In this document: piece after piece, positions 1-46,352 of the stretch
Position numbering within the stretch: position 1 is the first letter of the stretch
Layout of the letters: each line of letters starts with the position of its first letter
Assembly: GCA_047495785.1 (NCBI GenBank)
Contig: JBLDXI010000046.1
Span: 1,488,001-1,552,000, forward strand
Direction: 5' to 3'
From: Lepidodermella squamata
Taxonomy: Eukaryota; Animalia; Gastrotricha
Length of the DNA stretch: 64,000 nucleotides
Program-made: the position numbers and the translations under genes
The notes under the pieces: model-generated
Databases searched by the model: none
What the model saw: the letters and a program-made list of their open reading frames with translations, nothing else
Told to the model about the DNA's origin: nothing

Positions 1-3000
1 GATATCGTCGTATCCGAGGTTCGATTTTTTAATTGGAAACTTTCGTGTTGCAAAATTCGATTTTTGCGCCTTCAATTTTTCGAAAATTGAAAATGTCACT
101 TTTTAAATTCGAATTCAATTTTTTTAAATCCAAAACTTGAAACATTTTTGAATTGACGACTTTATTCGCAGGTTTCGATGATTCGCGACATCCGCGAGCG
201 AGAAATTCGAATTTACACCGACGCTGGTCGTATTTCGCGGCCACTTCTCATCGCTCAAAACCAGCGATTACTGCTGAAACGGCACCACGTTCAAGACCTG
301 AAAATGCGCAGCCGGACGAATTTTGGCTGGCAAGAACTGCTGCAATCAGGCGTGGTCGAGTACATTGACTGCATGGAAGAAGAGACCATCATGTGCGCTA
401 TGACGCCCGAAGACTTACTCCCAGACGGCGTCTACTGCTCGTCGTACACGCACTGCGAAATCCACCCGTCGATGATTTTGGGCGTCTGCGCGTCGATCAT
501 TCCGTTTCCCGATCACAACCAGTCTCCGCGTAACACCTACCAGTCTGCTATGGGTAAACAGGCCCTTGGGGTCTACGTCACAAATTTCCACGTTCGCATG
601 GACACGCTTGCCCATGTGCTGTACTACCCTCAGAAGCCTCTGGCCACCACTCGAGCTATGGAATATTTGCGTTTCGCCGAGTTGCCGGCTGGTATCAATG
701 CCATTGCAGCTATTGCTTCATACACAGGCAAGTTATTTAGTTTCGGCCCAAAATTAAGTTTACAGCGCCCAGTTAGAGGCTAAAGCAAACTAAATTACGA
801 TTTGTTGACCCCAACTCGTAGTCGACTAGGCAGCAGAGGAGGTAGACCCTAGCACTACTGAAGTGTAAATCTGCTCCAGTGTCAGCTCCCGTTAGAGAAG
901 TACTAAACATACGGCATCAGATCCGAATTTGTTTTCTGATATTTCTCTTTGCAAATCGTATATTTCGAGTTGAGCAACTATGTAATTGAATTTGTTTTTC
1001 TCGTCTTAGGCTACAACCAAGAAGATTCAGTCATTTTGAACGAATCAGCCGTTGATCGAGGCCTCTTCCGAACCTTTTTCTTGCGTTCTTTCAACGAAGC
1101 TGAAGCGTCTGTCGGCCTCGAGCAAGAAGAGCGCATCGAACGCCCGACTCGAAACGACACTCTGGGCATGAAAAATTCGTGCTACGACAAGTTGGAAGAA
1201 GACGGTATTGTCGCACCAGGCACTCGTGTTTCCGGCGATGACGTGCTTATCGGCAAAACCGTGACTCTACCGCCGGCTAACGATATGGGCGGAGTCGAAA
1301 ACACAATCGCTAAAAAATTCACGAAACGTGACGCGTCTGTCTACATGAAACACAGCGAGACTGGCATTGTCGACCAAGTCCTGATGACGATCAATTCCGA
1401 CGGTTTCCGTTTCGTGAAAGTCCGCGTTCGATCGGTTCGAATTCCGCAAATCGGCGACAAATTTGCGTCTCGCCACGGTCAAAAAGGTACGTGCGGCATG
1501 CGGTACCGCCAGGAAGACATGCCGTTCTCAGCCGAGGGCATTGCGCCCGATATCATCGTCAACCCTCACGCTATCCCGTCTCGCATGACAGTCGGGCATT
1601 TGATCGAGTGCCTGCAGTCGAAGGTTGCGTCGATGAAGGGCGAAATGGGCGATGCGACGCCGTTCAACGATACGGTCAACGTACAAAAAATCAGCAATCT
1701 ACTGCACGATTTCGGCTATCAGTGCCGCGGCAACGAGGTTCTGATGAACGGCTTCACTGGGCGCAAGTTGAATGTTCAAATCTACCTGGGTCCGACCTAT
1801 TACCAGCGTCTGCGTCACATGGTAAGTGCTTTTTGAGTGTTTCAATTTCATCGCGGGCGTAATTTCGTACGTACCCACAATTACAGTAGCAGAAGCATGG
1901 AATAGAATTAAAGTTTACTATCGAAATTTTTGCTTTAAGCGAGCAATATGTATCTGAAGTTGTCTACACTTGTTAGAACCGTGATGACGATTAAGAGTGA
2001 GAAATCGCTTCTCGGGATTACGGAGACGGATCCTGTGTTAAAAGGTTTCAGCAGTAACGGTGCAGAGAAGATTGTCTCATATCTCCGTTGAATAGCGGGA
2101 ATAGCGTTAGGAGCAGAATATCTGAAATCGCAGAATAATCACTCATGTAGTATTTACTCGGGAATCGGTAAGAATTTCGGCAAGTCATAGTTGTGGCATC
2201 CGCCGGGGCCTAGAGGACGTCTCGCTTGTTCGAGGCGAATGGTGGGTTTCGTTTCTGCGGCGTCCAAGTGTAGTACCGGAATGGGATCATTTCTTTCACG
2301 CGAATATTTCGTCGTTGTTGCGTTCCTCAAGTAGTAGTACTTTCGTAATCGCATTTCCCTGCGATGTCCGCGGCTGAGCTGAATAAAACAAAATTGTTCA
2401 AGAGGAGATACCTTTTGGACAGCCAGCTGATCGTCAGTGCCCATCGAAATTTGTTCCTCTTCAAACAGCGTGGTTTGCTTGTTGCTGTTCGTGATTAGAA
2501 CGACAAGAGTGTTGAGATTCGACACCGTTTTGCTAAAAAGAGCGAACATTTTTGCTGATTTGACAACGACCAGTTGAAGGTTGAAGCTTTGTAACAATGT
2601 ATGTAGACGAGGTGATTCTCTGGAACTTGTTCATCACGAATCAGCTTTTGAACTCCGTTGTTGCAGCCTGAATAAGCAGCAGCGTCATCGAAACCACGCG
2701 AAGCTATTTTTTCGATTGTTGAATTCGCGTTGCTAAGTTGGACCTTAAGGGAAGGTTCCTCTTAAATTTGACGTCACGTCAAACGTCAAGTTCACCTAGA
2801 TATCATCGGGTGGTGGCGTTGAAATCGCAGCTGAGTGGAGATAGGAAGAATAAAAAAAGAGAACGGCCAACTGTGAGCATAACAAATGGCCTTGTTTGTT
2901 AGCTATTAAGCTATGAAAGGTTTATTTATTTACCTGAGAAGGTATTGCGCGAGGTCTTGGCGGATTCTTGAAGGATTCTCCTCTAGCATGTTTTGAAAGT

Positions 3001-4861
3001 GACGACAATCATCGAACTTTTTGGGAAGGCAAAATTTAACAACTTGATTGATGGAATACATCAATTGAAAGGTTTATTTATTTACCTGAGAAGGTATTGC
3101 GCGAGGTCTTGGCGGATTCTTGAAGGATTCTCCTCTAGCATGTTTTGAAAGTGACGACAATCATCGAACTTTTTGGGAAGGCAAAATTTAACAACTTGAT
3201 TGATGGAATACATCAATTGAAAGGTTTATTTATTTACCTGAGAAGGTATTGCGCGAGGTCTTGGCGGATTCTTGAAGGATTCTCCTCTAGCATGTTTTGA
3301 AAGTGACGACAATCATCGAACTTTTTGGGAAGGCAAAATTTAACAACTTGATTGATGGAATACATCAATTGAAAGGTTTATTTATTTACCTGAGAAGGTA
3401 TTGCGCGAGGTCTTGGCGGATTCTTGAAGGATCCTCCTTTAGCATGTTTTGAAAGTGACGACAATCATCGAACTTTTTGGGGTCGGCAAAATTTAACAAC
3501 TTCCAAATATCCTCCGGATTATTCTGGAACGGAGTACCAGTCACTAGAATGCGATATTCACTCAGTCGCTCTAAATAAGAAAATTCCGTGTTTTTCAGCC
3601 GATGGGCCTCGTCGATGACCAACGTGGCCCATTCAACAGATTTGAACAATTCAGTATCCTTTACTGATTCAACGGTTGTGATCAACACGTTGAATTTCAT
3701 AATATGGTTAATATGGAGACGACAATCATCGAACTTTTTGGGGTCGGCAAAATTTAACAACTTGATTGATGCCCAGCAGACTTGTCCGACCGACTGACAG
3801 TCATGGGAAAAAGTGCAATCATGACTAGCAATTTTACAAGTTTTTTAACTGCGAAAAAGTTATTTCTTGAAAATCGATGTTTTGACTTTATAATTTTATT
3901 CTTCGCGATGAATGAACAAGCTCGAATTAGCCGACGGAAAATTCGAATGAATACATACGTTGTATTCGGAGCTGTATCCCGGTAAATCCTGTCGTGCCTC
4001 TCGGTCGCCTCCTCGCCTCTTCGCGGCTCGCTCTAGCAGCTCTCGATCGCGCGGCGGTTAATGAGTGAAATTAAAGTCAATTTTAATTTTTCGATGGCGT
4101 CCGAGACTGCGCCGATGGCTTGGCCCTATCGCGATAGTTTCTCAAAATTACAAAATAAAACAGAAGAACAAAGAAAATTGAGACAAAGTTCAGAGTAGTG
4201 GTCGTCGTAGTTATCGAAGTGATGACAATTTAGACCACTTCGGCTGTAGTTTTGTTTTCAGGAATACTGATGATGATAGTCGGGGAAGTACCGAACGAGG
4301 AATGTTTTATTCTGTGTCATTTTTTGTAGCTAGTGTTGAAATTTTTCATAATTTGACTGTTTCGTTTAACTTTTTATAAATAAATTTTCAAAACTACACG
4401 GCTATAAAAGCAAAATTAAAAAAGGGATTGTCCCACGTATTTTCGAATTTTTCAGTATTGCAAAATTTTAATAAAAAATGTGACGTTAAATTTTTCAGGT
4501 CGATGACAAAGTGCACTCTCGAGCTCGAGGTCCGGTGCAAATCCTGAACCGGCAGCCTATGGAGGGTCGGTCACGTGACGGTGGGCTGCGTTTCGGTGAG
4601 ATGGAGCGCGATTGTCAGATCGCCCACGGCGCCGCTCAATTCCTGCGCGAGCGGCTGTTCGAAGTCTCGGATCCTTACCGCGTGCACGTTTGCAACGCCT
4701 GCGGCCTGGTGGCCGTCGCCAATTTGTCACTGCAGACCTTCGAATGCCGAAGCTGCAAGCAGTCGACGCAAATATCGCAAATCCGGTTGCCATACGCGTG
4801 CAAGCTGTTATTCCAAGAGCTCATGTCGATGGCGATTGCGCCGCGAATTATGGTCAACTGA
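1..4861 (+). CDS. RPB2: DNA-directed RNA polymerase II subunit RPB2, 3' part (exons <1-18, 172-727, 1010-1821, 4499-4861)
   Basis: Motifs [50 protein letters not shown]|[32 protein letters not shown]. Exons join in frame; the second intron is GC-AG. Confidence 0.98.
2175..2380 (-). pseudogene. Degenerate FLYWCH/WRKY-like zinc-finger fragment (possibly Mutator-derived)
   Basis: [24 protein letters not shown]...LHLD...GCHNYD resembles the FLYWCH pattern, but the Cys ligands are lost. Confidence 0.3.
2440..2743 (-). mobile_element. Decayed hAT (ZMYM1/PRKRIR-like) transposase fragment
   Basis: Minus strand reads [37 protein letters not shown], then after a frameshift [11 protein letters not shown]...SNKQTTLF. 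This matches the hAT pattern RGQGYDGA..MSG...GVQ.LI.....YVHC.AH.LNLV. Confidence 0.75.
2915..3508 (-). repeat. 152-bp tandem repeat (3 identical copies plus source copy) of a CHD-helicase exon end with its splice donor
   Basis: tacctgagaagg recurs at 2931, 3083, 3235 and 3387. The unit encodes ...[22 protein letters not shown]|gtaaat; the copies carry a 1-nt deletion relative to the source. Confidence 0.95.
3386..3770 (-). pseudogene. SNF2/CHD-family helicase fragment nested antisense in the RPB2 intron
   Basis: FNVLITT..., [30 protein letters not shown] motifs. [14 protein letters not shown] is internally duplicated, and motif I and the C-terminal helicase domain are absent. Confidence 0.85.
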
Positions 4862-20353: not shown

Positions 20354-23205
20354 ATGTTGTCGTCGGCTCATAAATCCATGTCCGAATTCACGAAAATTAA
20401 TCTTTTGGGCCGTGGTGGTTTTGGATCAGCGTGGCATTGTAAACGGCGCGGTGACGACTACGCAGACTATGTTATTAAAGGAGCCAGTCTATTGGAAATC
20501 CGGCGTAAATATGAAGCAGATGCAAACTTGGCAGAAAAAATTGTCGAAATGACACGAAAAGAGGTAGTCTCTTGCTTCACATAAAAATCCCATAGAATGT
20601 GAAATAACCCCAATGTTAAATCTCACATGTTCAGCATCTCAAAATGGCCCAAGTTAACCACCCAAATATTGTCAGAGTCTACGGAGCTTTTGAAGGTAAG
20701 AAAATCGCAGTTTTCACAGTACCTAGTTAATAATTCGCAACTCGAAGAGTTGAACGAGGATGTGGATGCGGCAAGAAAGGGCGATCTGATGTATTATTTA
20801 GTCATGGAGTTCTGTGAAGGTGGTGATTTGACAAGATACTACCGGAGAGCCGAAAGCCCGATACCTGAGAGCAAAATTCAACTTTGGTCACGACAACTTG
20901 TATCAGCAGTCACATTTTTGCATGACATTTCTCTTGTGCATCGAGACATCAAGCCGGATAATATTTTTTTGAGCGGCGATTGCAAAACTATCAAATTGGG
21001 CGATTTTGGGGTAGCTAAGACGTTCAATGCGTAAGAAAAGGGTTCGTGTTGCAAATGTTTGAATGAGTTTGACACTTTTAGGCAATCTACCACCACTCCA
21101 ACTGGCATAGCAACCTTGATTTACACACCTCCAGAAGTTTTAAACGGCCAGAGGAATTCGCCAGCTAGTGATTGGTGGTCAGTGGGCATTACTTTGTTCG
21201 AAATAACAAATTTTACCAAGCCAGTAAGTTTTTTCAAAGCGAGAATTTCTTTCACCCGAAGTGGAATTATTTTGTCAAGTTTGAGACTTTACCCGCGATC
21301 TTGTTGTAAGTTTTATCTTCCGTATGTAAGTCGAGGCAGTTTTTACAGACTTATTCAGTGGCTCACCTAAGGCGTTCAATGAATCCCGTGGGTATTCAAC
21401 AGAGCTTCGAGATTTCGTGCTTTCAATGATTGTGAAGGATGTGGATCGACGAGCGACTTCGACCCAACTTCACAAAAGTAGCTTTCTGAGGAAGTCAATC
21501 GCACCGGAGGGTTCTGTCGAACCTGAAACAAGCAGGGAAAATGAGGCGTCTCATCTATCGGTAAATTACAAATTATCGCCTTTCTTCTCATCACACAGAA
21601 AAGGTGTTTAGTCGGCATGGCGTGTCAAATTTTCTGACAATAACGATGTAAACATCAAGATTTGGAACATACTCACTGGTAAGAAAGCCAAGGAAAATGG
21701 TCGAAAACTTACCATTTACTATTTTCAGCTAACGATATCGAAGATCCCAACGATTTGACACCTGAAGATATCGAACATTTGTTTAAGAATGTATCCCTGG
21801 GTTTGTTCAAAGCTGTTAGCAAATGGAGAACTGGAGTCACAGACGTAAGCTCGGTATTTATCCGGTTTCCAGTTGATAAGCATCGATGGCTAATCTGGCT
21901 TTTATTTTTCTCAGATGCTATCTGCACCAATTAAAGAGCCGGACCCAAACATGATCGTGGTAGGTTCTCTCTGATTCTAGGCACAGCTGAATAAATATAC
22001 ATTTGCAGAAGATGTTTGACTGTGTACGAACGAATAACTTACAGCGATTGAACGAGTTGTTGTCGGAGAAAAAGCTGGGATTGAATGTTAACTGCAAGGA
22101 CGATGATGGAGCATCTCCTTTATTCATAGCTGCTGAAAAGGGCCTAATTGAAATAGTCAAATTGTTAGCCGGAAGATTTCAGGCTGATGTGGAGTTGGGG
22201 GATAAGTTTCGTCGCACGCCGTTATACATAGCTGCTAAGCTAGGTCACATCGACGTTGTCAAGACACTGGCTGGAGAGTTCAAGGCAAATTCAAATGCTG
22301 CCCAAGAAGCTGGCTTCACGCCTTTGCACATCGCCGTCCAAGAAGGACAAGTCGAGGTGGTGAAGCTACTGGCTGGTCAGTTCAAGGCAAATATTGAGAC
22401 TGGCGACAATGATGGCTGGACGCCTTTGCACGTCGCTGCCAGGAATGGCCATGTCGAGGTGGTTACGACACTGGCTGGTCAGTTCAAGGCAAGTATTGAG
22501 ACTGGCGACAAGAAAGGCTGGACGCCTTTGCACGTCGCTGCCAGGAATGGCCATGTCGAGGTGGTTACGACACTGGCTGGTCAGTTCAAGGCAAATGTTG
22601 AAGCTGCTGATATCTGCGGCTGGACCCCAATGCACGCCGCCGCACATTATGGCCATGCCCAGGTGGTGAATACTTTGGCGGCCCAGTTCAAGGCTAAAGT
22701 TAATGCAACATCGGAAGATGGCGCGACGCCATTGTTCGTCGCCGCCGAAGAAGGAAAAGTCGAGGTGGTGAAGCTACTGGCTGGCCAGTTTAAAGCCAAA
22801 ATCGAAGCTACCTTGAAAAATGGCGCCACACCATTATACGTTGCCGCGCAAAACGGCCACATCGATGTTGTAAGAATACTGACTGGCGAATTCGGGGCAA
22901 ATGTTAACGTCGCAGCGAACAGCGGCGAGACGCCATTGATGTTATCTGCACATAATGGTCATTATGCTGTTGTCGAATTACTGATCACGAAATACAAAGC
23001 AGATGTTAATGCCATCCATCCACGTACGGGGTGGACCGCCTTAGACGCTGCAGAAAACTGTGGAGAGAGTGTTACAGCCGAAAGCAAACGAAGAACAATC
23101 GAAATATTGAAAAGAGCAAAAGCGCAAAACGCCGCGCATTCAGCAGCAAAGCTTCTTTTCGAACGAAGTCAACAATTACTAAATCGAGGGGGGGGGAAGG
23201 GATGA
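20354..23205 (+). CDS. NEK-like Ser/Thr kinase - SAM-like linker - ankyrin repeat protein (exons 20354-20563, 20635-20695, 20748-21030, 21082-21223, 21280-21305, 21359-21560, 21612-21678, 21729-21844, 21915-21959, 22009-23205)
   Basis: LGRGGFG, YVIK, LVMEFCEGGDL, HRDIKPDN, DFG, YTPPE and DWWSVG motifs. Ten exons join in frame via GT-AG introns into ~10-11 ankyrin repeats. Confidence 0.8.
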
Positions 23206-27389: not shown

Positions 27390-29153
27390 ATGGCTGATGC
27401 TGCTGTTGCCGCTGCCGCTGCTGCTGCTGTTGAAGTCGTCTTCGACGACAACCTTGGCGATACCGACTCCGATCTATCAAGCGATGACGATGACGATTTG
27501 CCTCTGGCAACGCTGAAGCCGGATATCAAGGGCGCCTGGGGAAAGCTGAATGAAGTACCCAAGAACTACACGCAACCTCAAGTTTTCAACCGCCCTCAAG
27601 GTCTAACCTATGAAATTCGGGCTGCATATCGTTTGGCTACAACGACCGCCGATGACGATGAACCGGAAGGTGACGATGAACCGATCGCCGGGCCTAAGCC
27701 TCGCCGAGACATTGGCAACCAACGATTCGGAAGGTTGGTCATCTTGGAACTATGTTTCCCGTCTTCGCGTTGATAATCGCTCAGACAAATCAATACTCGC
27801 ACCAGTCTTATCAACCGGGCATGCAGCAGTTCAATCATCTTGAAGAGCCTGAGTTGTTGCGATTCATTGCGATTCTGATTTGCATGGGACTGGTCGACTT
27901 GCCTGGTATTCGTCTGTACTGGAAGGAATCTGATGGTCTTTTTTATCAAGGTAAATTTTTTGTCTAATTTTCATGCTTTGTACTTAATTTTTGCTGATAT
28001 AGAGTACATCGCCACAACAGATGGTCGCCTGGAAAGGCCCGTGTAACATAAAGCAATATATGGATGCGAAGCCACTAAATGGGGCCTCAAGTTCTGGGCA
28101 CTGGCTGCCTCAGTTTCGGGTTATGTCTATAACTTTTCGCTTTACACCGGCAAAGACAGAAGTAAGTATTATTGTGAAACTCGCGCTTGAATTTGATTTC
28201 ATCTCAATTAGCTCGCGGCGACGACGCTGCCAAAGCAGGAGTTGGCGAGCGCGTCGTGTTGGATCTGGTTCGCGATTATCGGCTTCTTCCATAAGGTAAT
28301 TATGGATAATTTCTTTTCGTCCCCTTCGCTTTTTTTGAAGCTCCTGGGACAAAATGTTCTTGCGTTGGGAACGGTGCGAACTAATCGCGTTGGCCTTGAA
28401 AAATCGGTGCCAATCAAGGACCGGAAACCAGTCCGGGATTCGTACCAGTTCAAGTTTCTGTCGAACAATCTTATCTACCTGAGCTGGGCAGTGAGTCAAT
28501 TTTGTATTTTCTTATTTTGGTGACTACTATTCTTACCCTAGGATAAAAGGGTGGTCAATTTTTTGTCAACCTGGCACAATGGGGTCAAAGCCGCTGAAGG
28601 CGTGAAGCGCAGAACCGCACACGGCCAGAGCATTGACGTCGATTGTCCGACCCTGGTGAAAGCGTACCAAGGCCTCATGCGTGGCGTCGATATGGCCGAT
28701 CGCCTTCGTACGACGTACAGCATCTACATTCCGGGTCGGAAATGGTGGCGAGTGGTGTTTTACTGGGGTCTCGAAACTGCACTGAACAACGCCTTCATTG
28801 TATGGCGGCAGGTTTGCGAGGACGCACTCGACGCACTCGATTTTCGGCGCGAACTCATCGCTGAGCTGCTTGCTGCCGCGCAATTGGCTCCAAACACGGC
28901 CACTGGGAAACGCCGCAGGTGCGATGTCAATGTCGCGTTGACGCCTACGACGGCTTGGCGAGCTGGCGGCCACTACCCGGAACACAACGGCTACCTGCCT
29001 GGAAGCACGACTTCGGTAATGCGCCGTTGCCGACTCTGCCACGCCCAAGGCAAGCGCAAAGAAACTTTTATTCACTGTGCGAAATGCCCGGAATCGTACC
29101 TTTGCGTTGTACCTTGCTTCGGGCAGTATGGACCTCACCGTGGCCAAGCTTGA
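27390..29153 (+). pseudogene. Decayed, intron-containing piggyBac (PGBD4-like) transposase
   Basis: Acidic N-terminus, ELLRFIAILICMG...YW, KQYM..KP/KWGLK, MDNFFSS, GTVRTNR, W|DKR, MRGVDMAD, KWWR and a C-terminal CRD. There are frameshifts, a deletion of the region carrying the first catalytic Asp, and introns at ~27951, ~28162 and 28491. Confidence 0.92.
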
Positions 29154-29556
29154 AATCGAAATACGAACTTCCAATGATTTTTCCTGATTTTTGTCCATAT
29201 TTTCTGACATTTTTCTACTAATAAAATGATGAATAAAACTATAAAATTAGCATATGCGCGTGTTTGGACGCCTCAATTTTTGCGTGTGAAGACGCCTCAT
29301 TAGCGTGTCGAGACGTCTTAGTAATTTTTTTCGCAACTTGCGGGTATAGACGTCGAGTTTTTGAAAAAGCGGGTATACGCGTCCAAGTTGACGTGTAAAC
29401 ACGCAAAATCACCGAAAAACGCCTTTGCGTGTATACGCGCACATAGACACGCGCTGCCGTAGGCGCTGGAGGGTTTTAACGCTTGACTGCCATTTTTGGT
29501 TTTTGGCAGAAGTTAGTTTTCGGCATAATCTATTCGAAGCAATCCCGTCTAACCGT

Positions 29557-38588: not shown

Positions 38589-41500
38589 TCAGCTTGCAGC
38601 CGTGTAGACCTTCTGCAGATGAGCATACATTTTCTCGTCGCCGAACATCGTTTTAGCGAGACTGCGAGACTTGGCCTCCCACACGCTCGCCTGCCGCTGG
38701 TCGCCCACCTGCTGGTAGCACAAGTACAGGCCGTGGCTGGCGTCGAGCGCCTCCATCGACAGCCCGAAGTCCTCGTACATTTTCAGGCACGGTTCTAGCA
38801 GGTCGGCGGCCTCCTTGAAACGCGCCCTGTCCATGAGTGCAATCGACAGCGTCGCGGCAACGCGGCACGCCATCAAGTTCAGCGACTGGTCGTGGCGCAG
38901 CGAACGCGCTTCGTTCAACATCGCGCCCAGCCGGTCGATGTCGTCGTCGGAAAACCGCTCAGAGCCACATCTCGATTTCGCCGATTTGCTTTTAGCTAAA
39001 AAATAATACAGATTAACTCAGATTTAAACCTCGATTTTTTCAAGTTTGAAATCATAAAATTCAAAAATTTTAAATATGGTTTTCAAGTTTTACGATATCA
39101 CTCATGTCTTAATTTTACAGAGCTAATTAAACTAATACTTGAAATTAAGAAGTTCTTTAACAATTACGATTATCCATAACTTCCCTACATTTTAGATCGT
39201 ATTGTTTCTTTACATTCCGCATTCGGCGTAAAATGGTCATGAATAAAACTATAATTGCTGCCTTATGATACCAATAAACCGACCGAAAACGCACTATTTC
39301 GTTTTCTTCATGTGGCCAAGTTGAACAACTACCATCAGCTAGGAGCTGAGAAAGTTCCAAGTGATCATCAACTTTGCCGCCTACTACAATGAGGCCTTAT
39401 AAATAGGAAATTCAACTTTTTGTTACAGTGGTTCCAAATCTGCTGCGTACAGTGCCCTATACGCCAAGCTCTACCTCGCCAATGGGCTGATATCATTCGA
39501 GTCAGCAACAAAGGTTACTACTGTCTAACTGCTATAGACAGTTATAGACCACATTAAGCCATAACTTCCTTACATTCTATATCGTATTGTTTCTTCACAT
39601 TCCGCACTCGGCGTAAAATGGTCATGAATAAAACTATAATTGCTGCCTAATAATTTCTTTGAACTCCGGCCCGGCACGCGTTGTTCTCGTTTCGGCAAAA
39701 TTTGTAAATTACAATTTTGCCAATTTTGCCGAAACGAGAACAACGCGTGCCGGGCCGGAGTTCATGAGGTGATTCATCGGGATCTCAAGCCCGAGAATGT
39801 CTAAGTCTAGGTCTAGGTCTAGGGACGATGGACCCCTGGTCATTGCTGACTAAGGCTTGTCGAAACAGCTCGAAACGTTTGACGAATTGACGGCTACGAA
39901 AGTTGGAACACCTATCAGCTGGGGGCCCGAGCTACATGTCAATAAGAAGCGTAAGTACGGAATGGCAGTTGGCATGTGTGCCTTACCGAACTAGAAAAAC
40001 CTGACCGAAAAACACCCTCACGTGAATAAACTGCACAACCCGGGTGCCTTAGAGAAAGTTCCCAGTGATCATCAACGCGTAAAAATCGAGAATCCTCGAA
40101 AGTGCGGTGGTGATGATTGGATTGCACGGGGCATTCGACGTACATCTGCAGCAAATGTAAAATACCATTCCACCCACTTTGCTTCGCCAAATACAATATG
40201 CATTTCCGCTGAATAGCTATGAGTCGCCAATTTTTACGCTACTTAACTGTTTACTGAAAGATTCTTTCTTTCTGTGCTTCTTTCAAGAAAAACCTGACCG
40301 AAAAACACCCTCACGTGAATAAACTGCACAACCCGGGTGCCTTAGAGAAAGTTCCCAGTGATCATCAACGCGTAAAAATCGAGAATCCTCGAAAGTGCGG
40401 TGGTGATGATTGGATTGCACGGGGCGTTCGACGTACATCTGCAGCAAATGTAAAATACCATTCCACCCACTTTGCTTCGCCAAATAAAATATGCATTTCC
40501 GCTGAATAGCTATGAGTCGCCAATTTTTACGCTACTTAACTGTTTACTGAAAGATTCTTTCTTTCTGTGCTTCTTTCAAGAAAAACCTGACCGATAAACA
40601 CCCTTACGTGAACAAACTACACAACCCTGGTGCCTTAAGATTCTTTCTTTCTAAGTTTCTTTCAAGAAAAACCTGACCGAAAAACACCCTCACGTGAATA
40701 AACTGCACAACCCGGGTGCCTTAGAGAAAGTTCCCAGTGATCATCAACGCGTAAAAATCGAGAATCCTCGAAAGTGCGGTGGTGATGATTGGATTGCACG
40801 GGGCGTTCGACGTACATCTGCAGCAAATGTAAAATACCATTCCACCCACTTTGCTTCGCCAAATAAAATATGCATTTCCGCTGAATAGCTATGAGTCGCC
40901 AATTTTTACGCTACTTAACTGTTTACTGAAAGATTCTTTCTTTCTGTGCTTCTGTACATCTGCAGCAAATGTAAAATACCATTCCACCCACTTTGCTTCG
41001 CCAAATACAATATGCATTTCCGCTGAATAACTATGAGTCGCCAATTTTAACGCTATTTTACGGTATTTCACCTGACCGATAAACACCCTCACGTGAATAA
41101 ACTGCACAACCCTGGTGCCTTAAGATTCTTTCTTTCTAAGTTTCTTTCAAGAAAAACCTGACCGAAAAACACCCTCACGTGAATAAACTGCACAACCCGG
41201 GTGCCTTATGAACAGTACGACTTCGGGCGAGCTTCGGAATAGCGTTTTCAGCCATACGCCAACATGACAACATGGCAGTTAGCATTGAGAAGTCCAAAGC
41301 CACCCTTGAGGATTCTAAACTGTTCAAAGCTGTTCTAGAAGAGGCAGATGTGTTATCCAAAGTAAGTCGGCTGATCTAATCTGTCTCCTTATTCAATTAT
41401 TTGACATTTTCAATTTTTTGCTTGCGCCTCATCTAAACCTGTTGATATTCCACGAATCGTTCTTACACAATGGGCAACTGTTCTTGGTGACGGAACTGTA

Positions 41501-44500
41501 CTTAAAATCGTTTGATGACGACATTTCGGACCTCATCAAAGATGCCAACCCGTACAGTGAAAAAGAGCTCGCTAAAGATTTGTTCGAGCTGGTTGCCGGG
41601 CTAACCATGCTTCACGATAACAAGGTGATTCATCGGGATCCCAACCCCGAGAATGTCTTAAGGTCTAGAGACGATGGACCCCTGGCTGACTAGGGCTAAA
41701 TACTCGTTTAAAATACTCGGTATGTTTCTCGATCCTAAACAACAATCGATGGCTTTACGCCGAAATGCGCAAATCGAGCTACAATCTACCGTGAAATTGA
41801 ACAATCTAAGAGCTCGACCCCAAAGTTCTGACGACTGCTGGTAATTTCTCGTTAAATCTAACCATCTAACTGCCAAAAAATGAACCCGGGCTAACGCAAA
41901 TTTAAACATCCGAAAATTAGCCAAAAAATTTCAATTTTTCACCCAAAAAAAATCTCACAAAATAATTCCCGAATTTTTCCAAGAATCGAAAAGCAATTTT
42001 TAAAACGTACTTTTAGCACCAGATTTCTTGTCGCCCTTCCGTTCAGATTTCATCGATTTCAGCAAATCATCCAGCCGTTTGATCGACCGCCTCGTATCAG
42101 CCGACTCGCCGCTTTCGAGCAGACACAGCCGGCAATTGCAAACGAAATCGTAGCTGCCGCGCAGCACCTTATCCCGCTCCTCGAACAACTTGGTCGGCTG
42201 GCAGTACTGAAACAGCAGCTGTTGCCCGGCCGCGACTGGCTTTATCGTGCGTACGAACATGAAATCGCCGATTATCGGATGCACGCAGTTGATTTCCGAA
42301 CACGAGTGGTTGACGTAAGACGGCACGAGCCACAGGCCTGTGTCGTGCCAGAATGTCGCGGCTGTTTCACTGCCATTCGAGTAGTCCATCCCAGCTTCGA
42401 ATGCGTTGTAGCGAACCACGTTTTTGATGCGTTCGATATCAACCGGCAGCGATTCGTCGTACTCGGCCTCTTCGAGCCATCGCAACTGCTCGCCGGCGTA
42501 CAACTTGTAGAACTCGCGGCCCAGCGACGGGTTTTCGACTAGCTTCTCAGAAATCACGGCGATCAACTCCTGCCTCCCGATATCAACGCACGAATTGCCA
42601 AAGTCGACCGTTATTTCAGTGGATCTATGCAAGGGAAAAAAATCATAAGTTTTTCAATTTTCAACAAGGATTTTTCGTCTTACTTTGGATCGCATTTCTT
42701 GTAGGCGAAAGCTTTCGTTGCGCTGACCAGAGTTCCTGCCGGAATGTCGACTTTAGCCACCAGGCCGCGCTCACAGCCAGCGACGGATCGAATCTCAACA
42801 AGGGACGAGTCGAAGAATTCGGCGTGGTTGAGAAAAACGCTGGAAAAGATAACAAAATCGTATACCCCCAGGCCAAGTAAATGTTAGGGATATTGGATAT
42901 AGAGGAGGAAATTCGAGCAGCAGTCGTCCTCAAGGTTAGACAGAATCAACCAGCATTCGTCCCAGCTACACCAAGGCAATGAATCGCAAATCCGGGACGA
43001 TCGCGAAAATCGAGCAGCATTCCTCTTGAAAATTATCACGACAATGGCGCCACTTCTTCTTGGATTTCGTGCCATTTTGTTCCAGGGTCGAACTAGTTCA
43101 ACGGCGCGCATCTTCTCGAATAAGATTGAGCTTGAAATCGACATTGATCAGATGGGCGAACAAGTTGCCATGAACCGAATTCACTCGCCGAGTTGATAGT
43201 ACGGGCCAAGAATTCGAAGGCTCGAGACATCTTCGACGAAGCAGAACGCCAGTGTGATGCGAAGATTCGGCGGCAAAAAAGGCGAGTGAAAATCAAAACG
43301 AAAATCGACAAAATGAGCGCTTGAATAAAAAATGACCAAAAACGCAATTTTTGACGAAAAATTAAGTTGGATTTTTTAATTTAAAAATTGAACCTTTCCA
43401 CCACTTTGCAGTATGCCTTTCAATGGAGCACTGAAATTCGGTAAAAACTACTTTGGCTCGGCCATTTTATGCTCGGTTTTTCAACACATTTCCTCCTCTT
43501 TTGTCCAATAAATACCCATATTGAAGAACTACAGCAAGGTCTGGAAATTCTTACCTTTTTTGGCTCTCGTCGTACATTTTCAGCAAGTCATACTTGCCAG
43601 TTTTCGATTCGCGATACGCCAGTTGCACTTCGTTGAAAAGCGTCGCAATTTCAGGCACGCCGCCCTGTTTCACATCTCGCTTCAAAAACGCCAGACATTC
43701 TTCGTAACGCTTCAGTGCTAACAGAGCTTTCCCTTTTCGATACAACAATTTCAGACTAGAGGAATCTATATCCAACCCGCGTTCTGTGTCTTCCAAGGCC
43801 AAAGCAGGCTTGTCGAGGGCTAGGTAACAGGCCGCTCGATTCGCGTACATAACAGCGTTTTTCGGGTTTGTTTTCAGCGCTTTTGAATAGCACTCGAGTG
43901 CTTTTTCGTAGTTTTTATCCGCAAAATAGCACATGCCAGCTTTACCGGGTTCCATCGTGTCGTAACCAATTGATGACGAAGCGGCTTGAGATTTTGATGA
44001 ATTATTCGAGAGAGGAACGCGCCACGTTCGACCCTTGAGAATCGGGTGAGAAGGTTCGAGAATGACAAATTGAGTCGGATTTTCACAACGAAGCGCTGGG
44101 AAACCGGACATGCTGGTTTTGAGCCACGGATTCATAAGCGCGATGATACTCTAAAAATTCATCAATTTCGGGAGTAAATTAAATAAAATAAAGGAGGGTA
44201 TTTACGCCAATTGGGACGAGATCTTCATCTGCAACGCGTTTCTTCGGCTTGTAATTGTAAAGACTAAGGGGTAATGCCTTTTCACCGCTCGGATCGTCCA
44301 GCACCAAATTGATGGCATTAATTTTCCAACTAGTACCAATCGACCGGCAGAGTAGAAATTTACCCGCATGTACATTATCCGGCCCGCATCGAACAATCTG
44401 GTCGATGGTTATCATATTTTCAGGCTTGATTTCAACCGGCGGCAAACCGCCATTTGGCGCGTCCATCGTTGTTTGGGTCATTGAAACTTGGTACTTGCCC

Positions 44501-44679: not shown

Positions 44680-46352
44680 TCAACGATGTTTCACAGATAA
44701 AAATAATTTGCCAGAAATGGGTCGGAGTAACAGCTCCATCACAGGTAACGGGTCACATTGGTTATCACGCGGAAATTCGACAGAGAAACGACGAAAAAAT
44801 GACGAGAGCACAACTTTCAGTTCATACATAGCAAAACGTTGCCCAATGCAGTTCCTTTGCCCTGCGGCGAACGGTACATAAGCATACGGGTGATTTTTCG
44901 GCGGAACCAGGTGCTCCGGAGTAGGAGTCATGAATCGCTCAGGAATAAATGAAAACGGATCGACGAAGTACTCCGGATTGTAATGCATAGGTTCAAGTAG
45001 CACCATAACACTAGTTCCTTTCTCCACGTGGTACTTGCCAAGATCCAGACCAGAATCGACATCTCGAGCAAAAGTTGGCACGGTTGGAAATCGGCGTAGG
45101 CTCTCCTTAATGCAGCACTCGATATATTTCATTTGTCGGAGATCGTTCATAGAGGCCGGTCGTGAAGATGACCCGAAAATCTCGTCAACTTCAGCTTGAA
45201 CTTTGCGCTGAACCTCTGGATTTGTTGCCAAAAGATACAAAGTCCAGGACAATGTGATCGCAGTTGTGTCATGGCCCTGAAATGAAGTAAACTTGAATGA
45301 AGTAAACTCGCGCAAGACAAACATCCTAACTTACCGCGAATAGGAAGGTATCGACTTCCTCTTGGACTTCTTTACGTGAAAGTTTAGTGAAGTTCTCACT
45401 CGCATAGAGAAGTGTGTCCAACAGAGCTAGTCGCTGCTTGCCAGGTCGATTGCTTTTAGCAGTGTCGACATCTTCGTTATCAGAGTTATGTTGGTTCATC
45501 TTGACTTCGAAATCGGCGCGGTTGAAAGTAGCAGCTCGTTCTTTGATGACCCTTTCACTGTAGGCATGAAGGATTTCGAGACATTTAGCATGTCGCCGAC
45601 CTGATGACATAAGCCGATACAAAAAATCAGGCCATTGGTGTAGGCTCTTAAACCGAGTATCGATGAGTTTGTTAATGTCGATAACTGCTTTCACATATTC
45701 AGCACTTGCGCCTTTCTGCGCATCCAGTGAGATGCCCATAGCCGTTTCACAAATCACGTCCATTGTTAGCAGCGTTGTAAGCTGAAAGATGTCAAACTCC
45801 TGCCGACTATCGGCATAATCTTCCAGGATTCTAACGAAAACTCCGGCGTGCTCATTCATTACCGGTAAAAATTCGCCCAGTATGTTAAAATGAAATGACG
45901 GCGTGATTAGCTTCCTGTGATTGTACCATTTCTCACCATGACTGAGAGGCAAACATAAGATAAGCGCACAGTCTACTTTGAAAGGAACGAAGCGCTCACC
46001 TAGTAATAAGACCTTCACCCAGCCATGGTTTTGCGAAGCGGTAATCCAAAGCCTTTCGAATCTCATGACTGTTCATCAAATCTTGAACGTATTCAGGTTT
46101 ATAAACAAGAACAACAGGCCACGTGCCCATCATCAGCGCAATAACTCCCTCATCCAGGTTTTTCTCGTAGCAAATATCCCAAAATTGCTGTCTCTGTGCT
46201 GCTGGATCGATTTTCAAACAATAAAAACTTCCGATTATCGGTAATGCAGGAAAGTGAACAGAAAACTGAGCAAGCTTGCGGTGCCTGAACCAGTAAAACA
46301 CGGATGCTGCAAGAAAGCCGACAAGTAATACCAGTAGGCTCAACAACAGCAT
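44680..46352 (-). CDS. Cytochrome P450, CYP4 clan (exons 46352-46000, 45941-45335, 45276-44680)
   Basis: PWLGEGL, WxxxRKLITPSFHF, EEVDTFLFA|GHDTT, KESLR, PERF and PFAAGQRNCIG motifs. Confidence 0.95.

Follow-up and report, generated by a model that had tools for sequence, protein, structure and literature searches.

Why should a gene of a compact animal genome carry, as its last intron, some 3 kb of DNA in which every readable fragment runs antisense to the host, the pieces of a protein kinase stand out of order and one fragment has been tandemly amplified? The question is raised by a minus-strand TPR-SET gene of the gastrotrich Lepidodermella squamata, located on contig JBLDXI010000046.1 of assembly GCA_047495785.1 within positions 1,488,001 to 1,552,000, a stretch of 64,000 nucleotides (nt) that is here called the window and whose own numbering is used throughout. 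Genome searches covered the whole 121-Mb assembly of 151 contigs. A first-pass annotation of the window had proposed that this intron, together with the last intron of RPB2, points to a recurrent mechanism by which fragments from several sources are captured and amplified, possibly as an intronic small-RNA memory. Our analysis favours a simpler answer, namely that the content of the intron is probably functionless debris which the host tolerates and which has been reshaped in place by local copying errors; a new mechanism is not opened by this locus.

The description of a last intron of about 3 kb that holds host-antisense fragments, one of them tandemly amplified, was borne out and its boundaries proved exact, the splice sites being read from the sequence (on the minus strand, GT donor 42010-42009 and AG acceptor 38997-38996). 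Splicing completes the interrupted codon in frame, and the SET exon reads on into the last coding exon (38995-38589). The intron and the segments that compose it are as follows.

38996-42010, minus strand: last intron of the TPR-SET gene, 3,015 bp, phase 1, GT-AG
39174-39269, plus strand: D4 repeat copy 1, 96 bp, 93% identical to copy 2, containing a 26-nt motif shared with a piggyBac relic
39270-39558, plus strand: X, full-length copy of the 293-bp array unit, old and diverged (global alignment z of about 5), with the reading HV.KL...EKVPSDHQ common to the unit
39559-39654, plus strand: D4 repeat copy 2, 96 bp, 93% identical to copy 1
39660-39764, no strand: near-perfect palindrome of 105 bp with a 43-bp perfect stem, directly adjoining the left end of kinase relic A
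39767-39990, plus strand: kinase relic A, spanning subdomains VIb-IX; stop at the DFG-Phe codon, frameshift from a GTCTAG microsatellite
39993-41208, plus strand: tandem array, unit of 293 bp composed of segments a-b-c-d, in the order U1, U2, a'd', U3, c*, a'd', a
41209-41697, plus strand: kinase relic B, spanning subdomains I-VII; relic of an intron (GTAAGT) at 41362, stop at the DFG-Phe codon
41698-42010, no strand: AT-rich tail reaching to the host donor, matching nothing else in window or genome

The readable content of the intron lies entirely on the plus strand. The AT-rich tail showed no homology with kinase relic A, with the array or with the intron head, and the remaining open reading frames (ORFs) of the intron returned no Pfam match on either strand.

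The two kinase relics indicate that the intron has been rearranged locally. Relic B matches Pfam Pkinase (PF00069) at 7e-10 over profile positions 57-132, a subdomain I-III reading followed by the intron relic lying upstream of this match, and relic A reads HRDLKPEN ... GTP..PE ... and on to subdomain IX. The permuted order reported for these pieces stands, as relic A (VIb-IX) precedes relic B (I-VII); the pieces are, however, not disjoint but overlap by approximately 80 bp (39767-39857 versus 41623-41697), these segments being about 95% identical apart from the expansion of the microsatellite and a 6-nt indel. Local alignment revealed no significant similarity beyond this overlap on either side. 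The codon aligned with the Phe of DFG is a stop in both relics (TAA in A, TAG in B), which indicates that the kinase was most likely dead before the two copies arose, and the relics most likely represent partial copies of one already dead kinase and not shuffled pieces. In relic B the expected HRD-L-K-PEN has changed to HRD-P-N-PEN, and both the catalytic-loop Lys and the Lys expected in subdomain II are gone. Neither relic presents the complete series of subdomains I-XI in one open frame with intact catalytic residues that a functional protein kinase would have, and the pair reads as a pseudogene. The nearest kinase elsewhere in this genome shares 36-40% identity over 50-74 residues, and a search of 1.84 billion representative proteins yielded only generic Ser/Thr kinases, the nearest of them at 33-35% identity. 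Uninterrupted reading persists in relic B over 50 and 91 codons, from which it follows that relic B had diverged from any relative mostly before it died, and no living parent is left in the genome.

The tandem amplification is both local and recent. The three full 293-bp units differ from each other at 0-2 positions (0-0.7% divergence), with two differences between U1 and U2, and none between U2 and U3 over the 289 nt before the junction. Divergence is higher in two 86-bp units with an internal deletion (a'd', 3-8%) and in the partial c* (5%), which make up an older layer of the array; the 59-nt segment a, 100% identical at both places, borders the end of kinase relic A as well as the start of kinase relic B. 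The heavily diverged copy X sits between the two D4 copies. Every unit of the array contains the same frameshift inside a cysteine (Cys)-rich reading, and U2 and U3 each contain a stop as well; with frames broken in every copy in this common manner, it follows that amplification acted on DNA that was already dead and non-coding.

The palindrome, whose 49-nt arms are 96% complementary and whose RNA fold reaches -87 kcal/mol (z = -18), stands exactly where the kinase overlap has its left border. Such a location agrees with an error of fold-back copying at a break. No second copy of the palindrome was found in the genome and its flanks carry no target-site duplication, on which grounds a miniature inverted-repeat transposable element (MITE) or other multi-copy foldback element was ruled out. 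A derivation of its arm from kinase sequence was also rejected, the match being one of 8 nt only and not significant in local alignment.

Taken in an order inferred from divergence, these features suggest the following path. A tiny last intron would have been enlarged by DNA of foreign or duplicated origin in antisense orientation to the host, consisting of a kinase gene copy in which a short intron of its own can still be seen and of the 3' tail of a piggyBac-type transposase gene (its Cys-rich domain and the region downstream), whether these arrived jointly or separately. The kinase would then have been killed by the stop at the expected DFG-Phe codon, after which early duplications of the tail unit may have produced X, now heavily diverged from the unit, and the D4 copies, still 93% identical. 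A subsequent rearrangement would have left the two partial kinase copies with their overlap of about 80 bp, now about 5% diverged, and the palindrome at one breakpoint, and very recent tandem amplification of the 293-bp unit (0-0.7% divergence), accompanied by deletion variants, would have completed the present arrangement. The array could have arisen by replication slippage or unequal sister exchange, and the permutation and the palindrome could be products of fold-back or template-switch repair. Local duplication, permuted overlapping kinase copies and a palindrome at a breakpoint agree plausibly with errors of replication or repair such as template switching, which has been reviewed as a source of complex local rearrangements (PMC9199198). 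The likeness to fork stalling and template switching (FoSTeS) and microhomology-mediated break-induced replication (MMBIR), as described there, extends to the duplicated non-collinear segments, the inverted duplication at a breakpoint and the nearby gain of tandem copies; unlike those processes, the junctions here are without clear microhomology, and the differing ages of the events make them a series and not a single burst. Of the two mechanisms that had been put forward, rolling circle or template switching, the latter is therefore plausible on account of the permuted overlap and the breakpoint palindrome, whereas the former, albeit possible, needs a source copy that has been lost.

When every segment of the intron was searched as DNA against the genome, together with the kinase and Cys-rich peptides, no parent or sister copy was found beyond the locus, the kinases of 36-40% identity being the only relatives. 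Two sources only are recognisable from these readings, a kinase and a probable piggyBac-type transposase tail, and the idea of capture from several sources finds no footing here, as neither of the two has a parent or another copy in the genome. The intron likewise differs from transposons of the Pack-MULE or Helitron type that capture gene fragments, in that its pieces are without identifiable parent genes, copies or element termini. With just two sources, co-orientation reflects one or two insertions followed by direct duplication. All duplications being direct, the seven same-strand readable pieces amount to 1-3 independent events, which is not significant alone, so that the shared strand, which had been taken as a signal, is simply kept by local duplication.

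This DNA probably persists in its present orientation because it confronts the host pre-mRNA with neither poly(A) signals nor strong donors and because the intron is spliced out. The host-sense strand of the intron contains no AATAAA, ATTAAA or GTRAGT, where 5.7 would be expected under a first-order Markov model of that strand (P = 0.0035), and the depletion is also observed when just the non-redundant 2 kb are considered (0 versus 3.8 expected, P = 0.02). The plus strand, antisense to the host, contains 13 such motifs (10 AATAAA, 1 ATTAAA and 2 GTRAGT), and the flipped orientation would thus expose the host transcript to many poly(A) signals. Such depletion agrees with what is known of selection that favours innocuous content in antisense orientation within introns; a bias of intronic elements towards the antisense strand has been documented and ascribed to selection against sense copies (PMC3088655, PMC3517506, PMC1794541). 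As in the antisense-biased transposon and pseudogene relics of mammalian introns described in those reports, decayed foreign DNA points against its host gene and the hazards of the sense strand (poly(A) signals and splice sites) are missing from the host transcript. The present case is unlike them in its compact genome with introns of about 55 bp, where one insertion makes a 50-fold outlier, and in its content, which is single-copy and belongs to no repeat family. The locus thereby offers a clean, datable case of a 55-bp-type intron that has grown 50-fold and has then been reshaped by local duplication, as well as a locus-level test of why antisense content alone survives, and its value is that of one data point for a genome-wide study of long antisense-filled introns.

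The label of piggyBac Cys-rich domain that had been given to the array unit is upheld in part. The unit reads H...RKC, then passes through the frameshift into Y.C..C....CF..Y..H and ends in a stop, one Cys of the first pair being missing, and it returned no match to the Pfam piggyBac C-terminal Cys-rich domain (PF13842). Using a local profile built from seven Cys-rich domains encoded at piggyBac-type loci of this same genome, the array piece was the best match outside the source ORF of the profile itself among 2,652 six-frame pieces of the window, albeit with an E-value of only 0.086, and a read-through with X at the frameshift scored 13.4 bits, a score that none of 2,000 shuffles reached. In addition, the 26-nt motif in D4 matches at 23 of 26 positions a site approximately 70 nt past the stop codon of a piggyBac relic (about 29221-29243), which none of 500 shuffles equalled. 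The likeness to the known domain thus comprises the residue pattern, the profile score and a post-stop motif in common with a relic 10 kb away, while the lost Cys, the frameshift in every unit, the missing Pfam match and the failure to find DDE, terminal repeats or TTAA-flanked ends set the unit apart. A derivation of the 293-bp unit from a piggyBac-type transposase tail is probable, not proven.

The relic in question is a decayed piggyBac transposase at 27752-29153 (plus strand, with flanks to about 29400), some 10 kb from the intron, in which DDE_Tnp_1_7 pieces and zf-Tnp_2 are spread over several frames and which is followed downstream by GC-rich subterminal repeats. Elsewhere in the genome, locus L020 (G000:C42:2520022-2523177) lacks a transposase core but has three consecutive piggyBac-type Cys-rich domains on a single strand.

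Several points weigh against the account of tolerated debris reshaped in place, or against parts of it. The piggyBac origin of the array unit is moderately supported, by a weak profile match and one short motif; none of the at least 78 genome matches to the DDE_Tnp_1_7 domain lies within 38996-42010, and no inverted repeat brackets the intron segments, nor were TTAA-flanked ends found. The kinase source may have been a nested gene that died in place, the cargo of a transposon or the last copy of a lost paralogue. Carriage by piggyBac was examined and rejected, as no nearest kinase locus adjoins a piggyBac transposase match among the matches listed (at least 78). The observed order would be given equally well by a large tandem duplication and two deletions, by a single multi-switch event or by reinsertion of a circle, and the analysis of junction microhomology that the first-pass annotation had recommended yielded no clear microhomology at the main junctions.

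Reinsertion of a circle deserves consideration in its own right, since a circular DNA intermediate carrying the kinase and the tail unit, copied slightly over one turn and inserted into the intron, would give in one step both the permuted order with overlapping kinase ends and a terminal redundancy of about 80 bp, and it would agree with the identical 59-nt segment a at the end of kinase relic A and at the start of kinase relic B. This route is nevertheless judged unlikely. It lacks a source copy elsewhere in the genome, the older relics X and D4 of the unit lie alongside and point to a long history in place, and the kinase overlap copies are about 5% diverged as against 0-0.7% for the array, which does not suit one recent event; Helitron-type hallmarks were sought only by Pfam scans of ORFs. 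A wider version, in which the footprint of such a circle lies in a transcribed intron, a copy-and-paste route of this kind is common to many antisense intron mosaics of roughly 3 kb in this genome and a small-RNA pathway draws on the hairpins of these mosaics, is held to be improbable to a marked degree. An artefact of assembly, whereby the permuted order or the copy number of the array came from misjoined near-identical repeats, might be suspected where units are 99-100% identical and partial units have junctions that occur twice; it is the least probable of the readings considered, as the kinase overlap copies differ by substitutions and indels and are thus not collapsed copies, the distinct variants a'd' and c* stand at defined places, the exons on either side keep the frame and the contig is a long one.

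There is also very little probability that the intron is a source of small RNAs, the host transcript with its antisense fragments and its 43-bp perfect hairpin being processed to small interfering RNAs (siRNAs) or Piwi-interacting RNAs (piRNAs) as an intronic memory. The hairpin as modelled would suit Dicer, the readable fragments are all antisense, and in Drosophila antisense insertions in host transcripts can seed piRNAs, a precedent reported in PMC13226689. The insertions concerned are, however, described there as exonic, located in the 3' untranslated region (UTR), and the chimeric transcripts as exported, so that the case would not be readily transferable to intronic DNA. Direct duplication accounts for the co-orientation, and a search of Rfam with the palindrome returned microRNA (miRNA)-like matches that were all far below the gathering thresholds (MIR2646, 57 versus 245 bits; mir-266, 42 versus 80 bits). 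The memory that had been envisaged would moreover have no target, as no other sequence in the genome has nucleotide similarity to any of the pieces. Uni-strand piRNA clusters such as flamenco (PMC10643416, PMC11400887) resemble the intron, when compared by sequence alone, in one-directional transcription over antisense transposon-derived fragments; unlike these clusters of tens to hundreds of kb, the intron is 3 kb in length, has two sources, is intronic and matches no element in the genome.

The second case on which the proposed recurrence was based was confirmed to the extent that the last intron of RPB2 contains a young tandem array antisense to its host, with a 152-bp period at 2914-3502 (3.9 copies, 98-100% identical). 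This array overlaps a minus-strand helicase-like ORF (…DEAHRLKN…), which is antisense to RPB2. Apart from the arrays of the RPB2 and TPR-SET introns, the window has no non-coding array of long period. If introns of about 3 kb filled with debris are common in this genome, the occurrence of two array-bearing long introns within 40 kb would cause no surprise. A coding ankyrin-repeat array is also present in the window at 22311-22790, with a period of 102 bp and units that are about 75% identical.

The host gene itself was searched exon by exon, and three of its exons were assigned.

43551-44135, minus strand: TPR exon, Pfam TPR_1 at 8e-17
42011-42624, minus strand: SET exon, Pfam SET at 5.2e-07, with its upstream acceptor at 42626-42625
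38589-38995, minus strand: last coding exon, encoding a weakly TPR-like C-terminal region (TPR_10 at 3e-4, under the curated cut-off), with the ORF 38589-38921 in frame with the splice

Two further introns of the gene were confirmed in frame, one of 55 bp (44205-44151) and one of 59 bp (42683-42625). When a homologue of the SET exon was sought in order to locate an orthologous locus none was found, and a metagenome scan likewise gave none. Between the donor of the TPR exon and the first SET exon lie approximately 700 bp (42850-43554, minus strand) which have no recognised coding match and in which no MYND finger was seen, and which may represent either a mid-sized intron or unrecognised small exons. 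Directly upstream of the TPR-SET gene is a CYP4-type cytochrome P450 exon (44680-45324, minus strand), the best public relative of which is 58% identical and comes from an ENA assembly, possibly of a related species.

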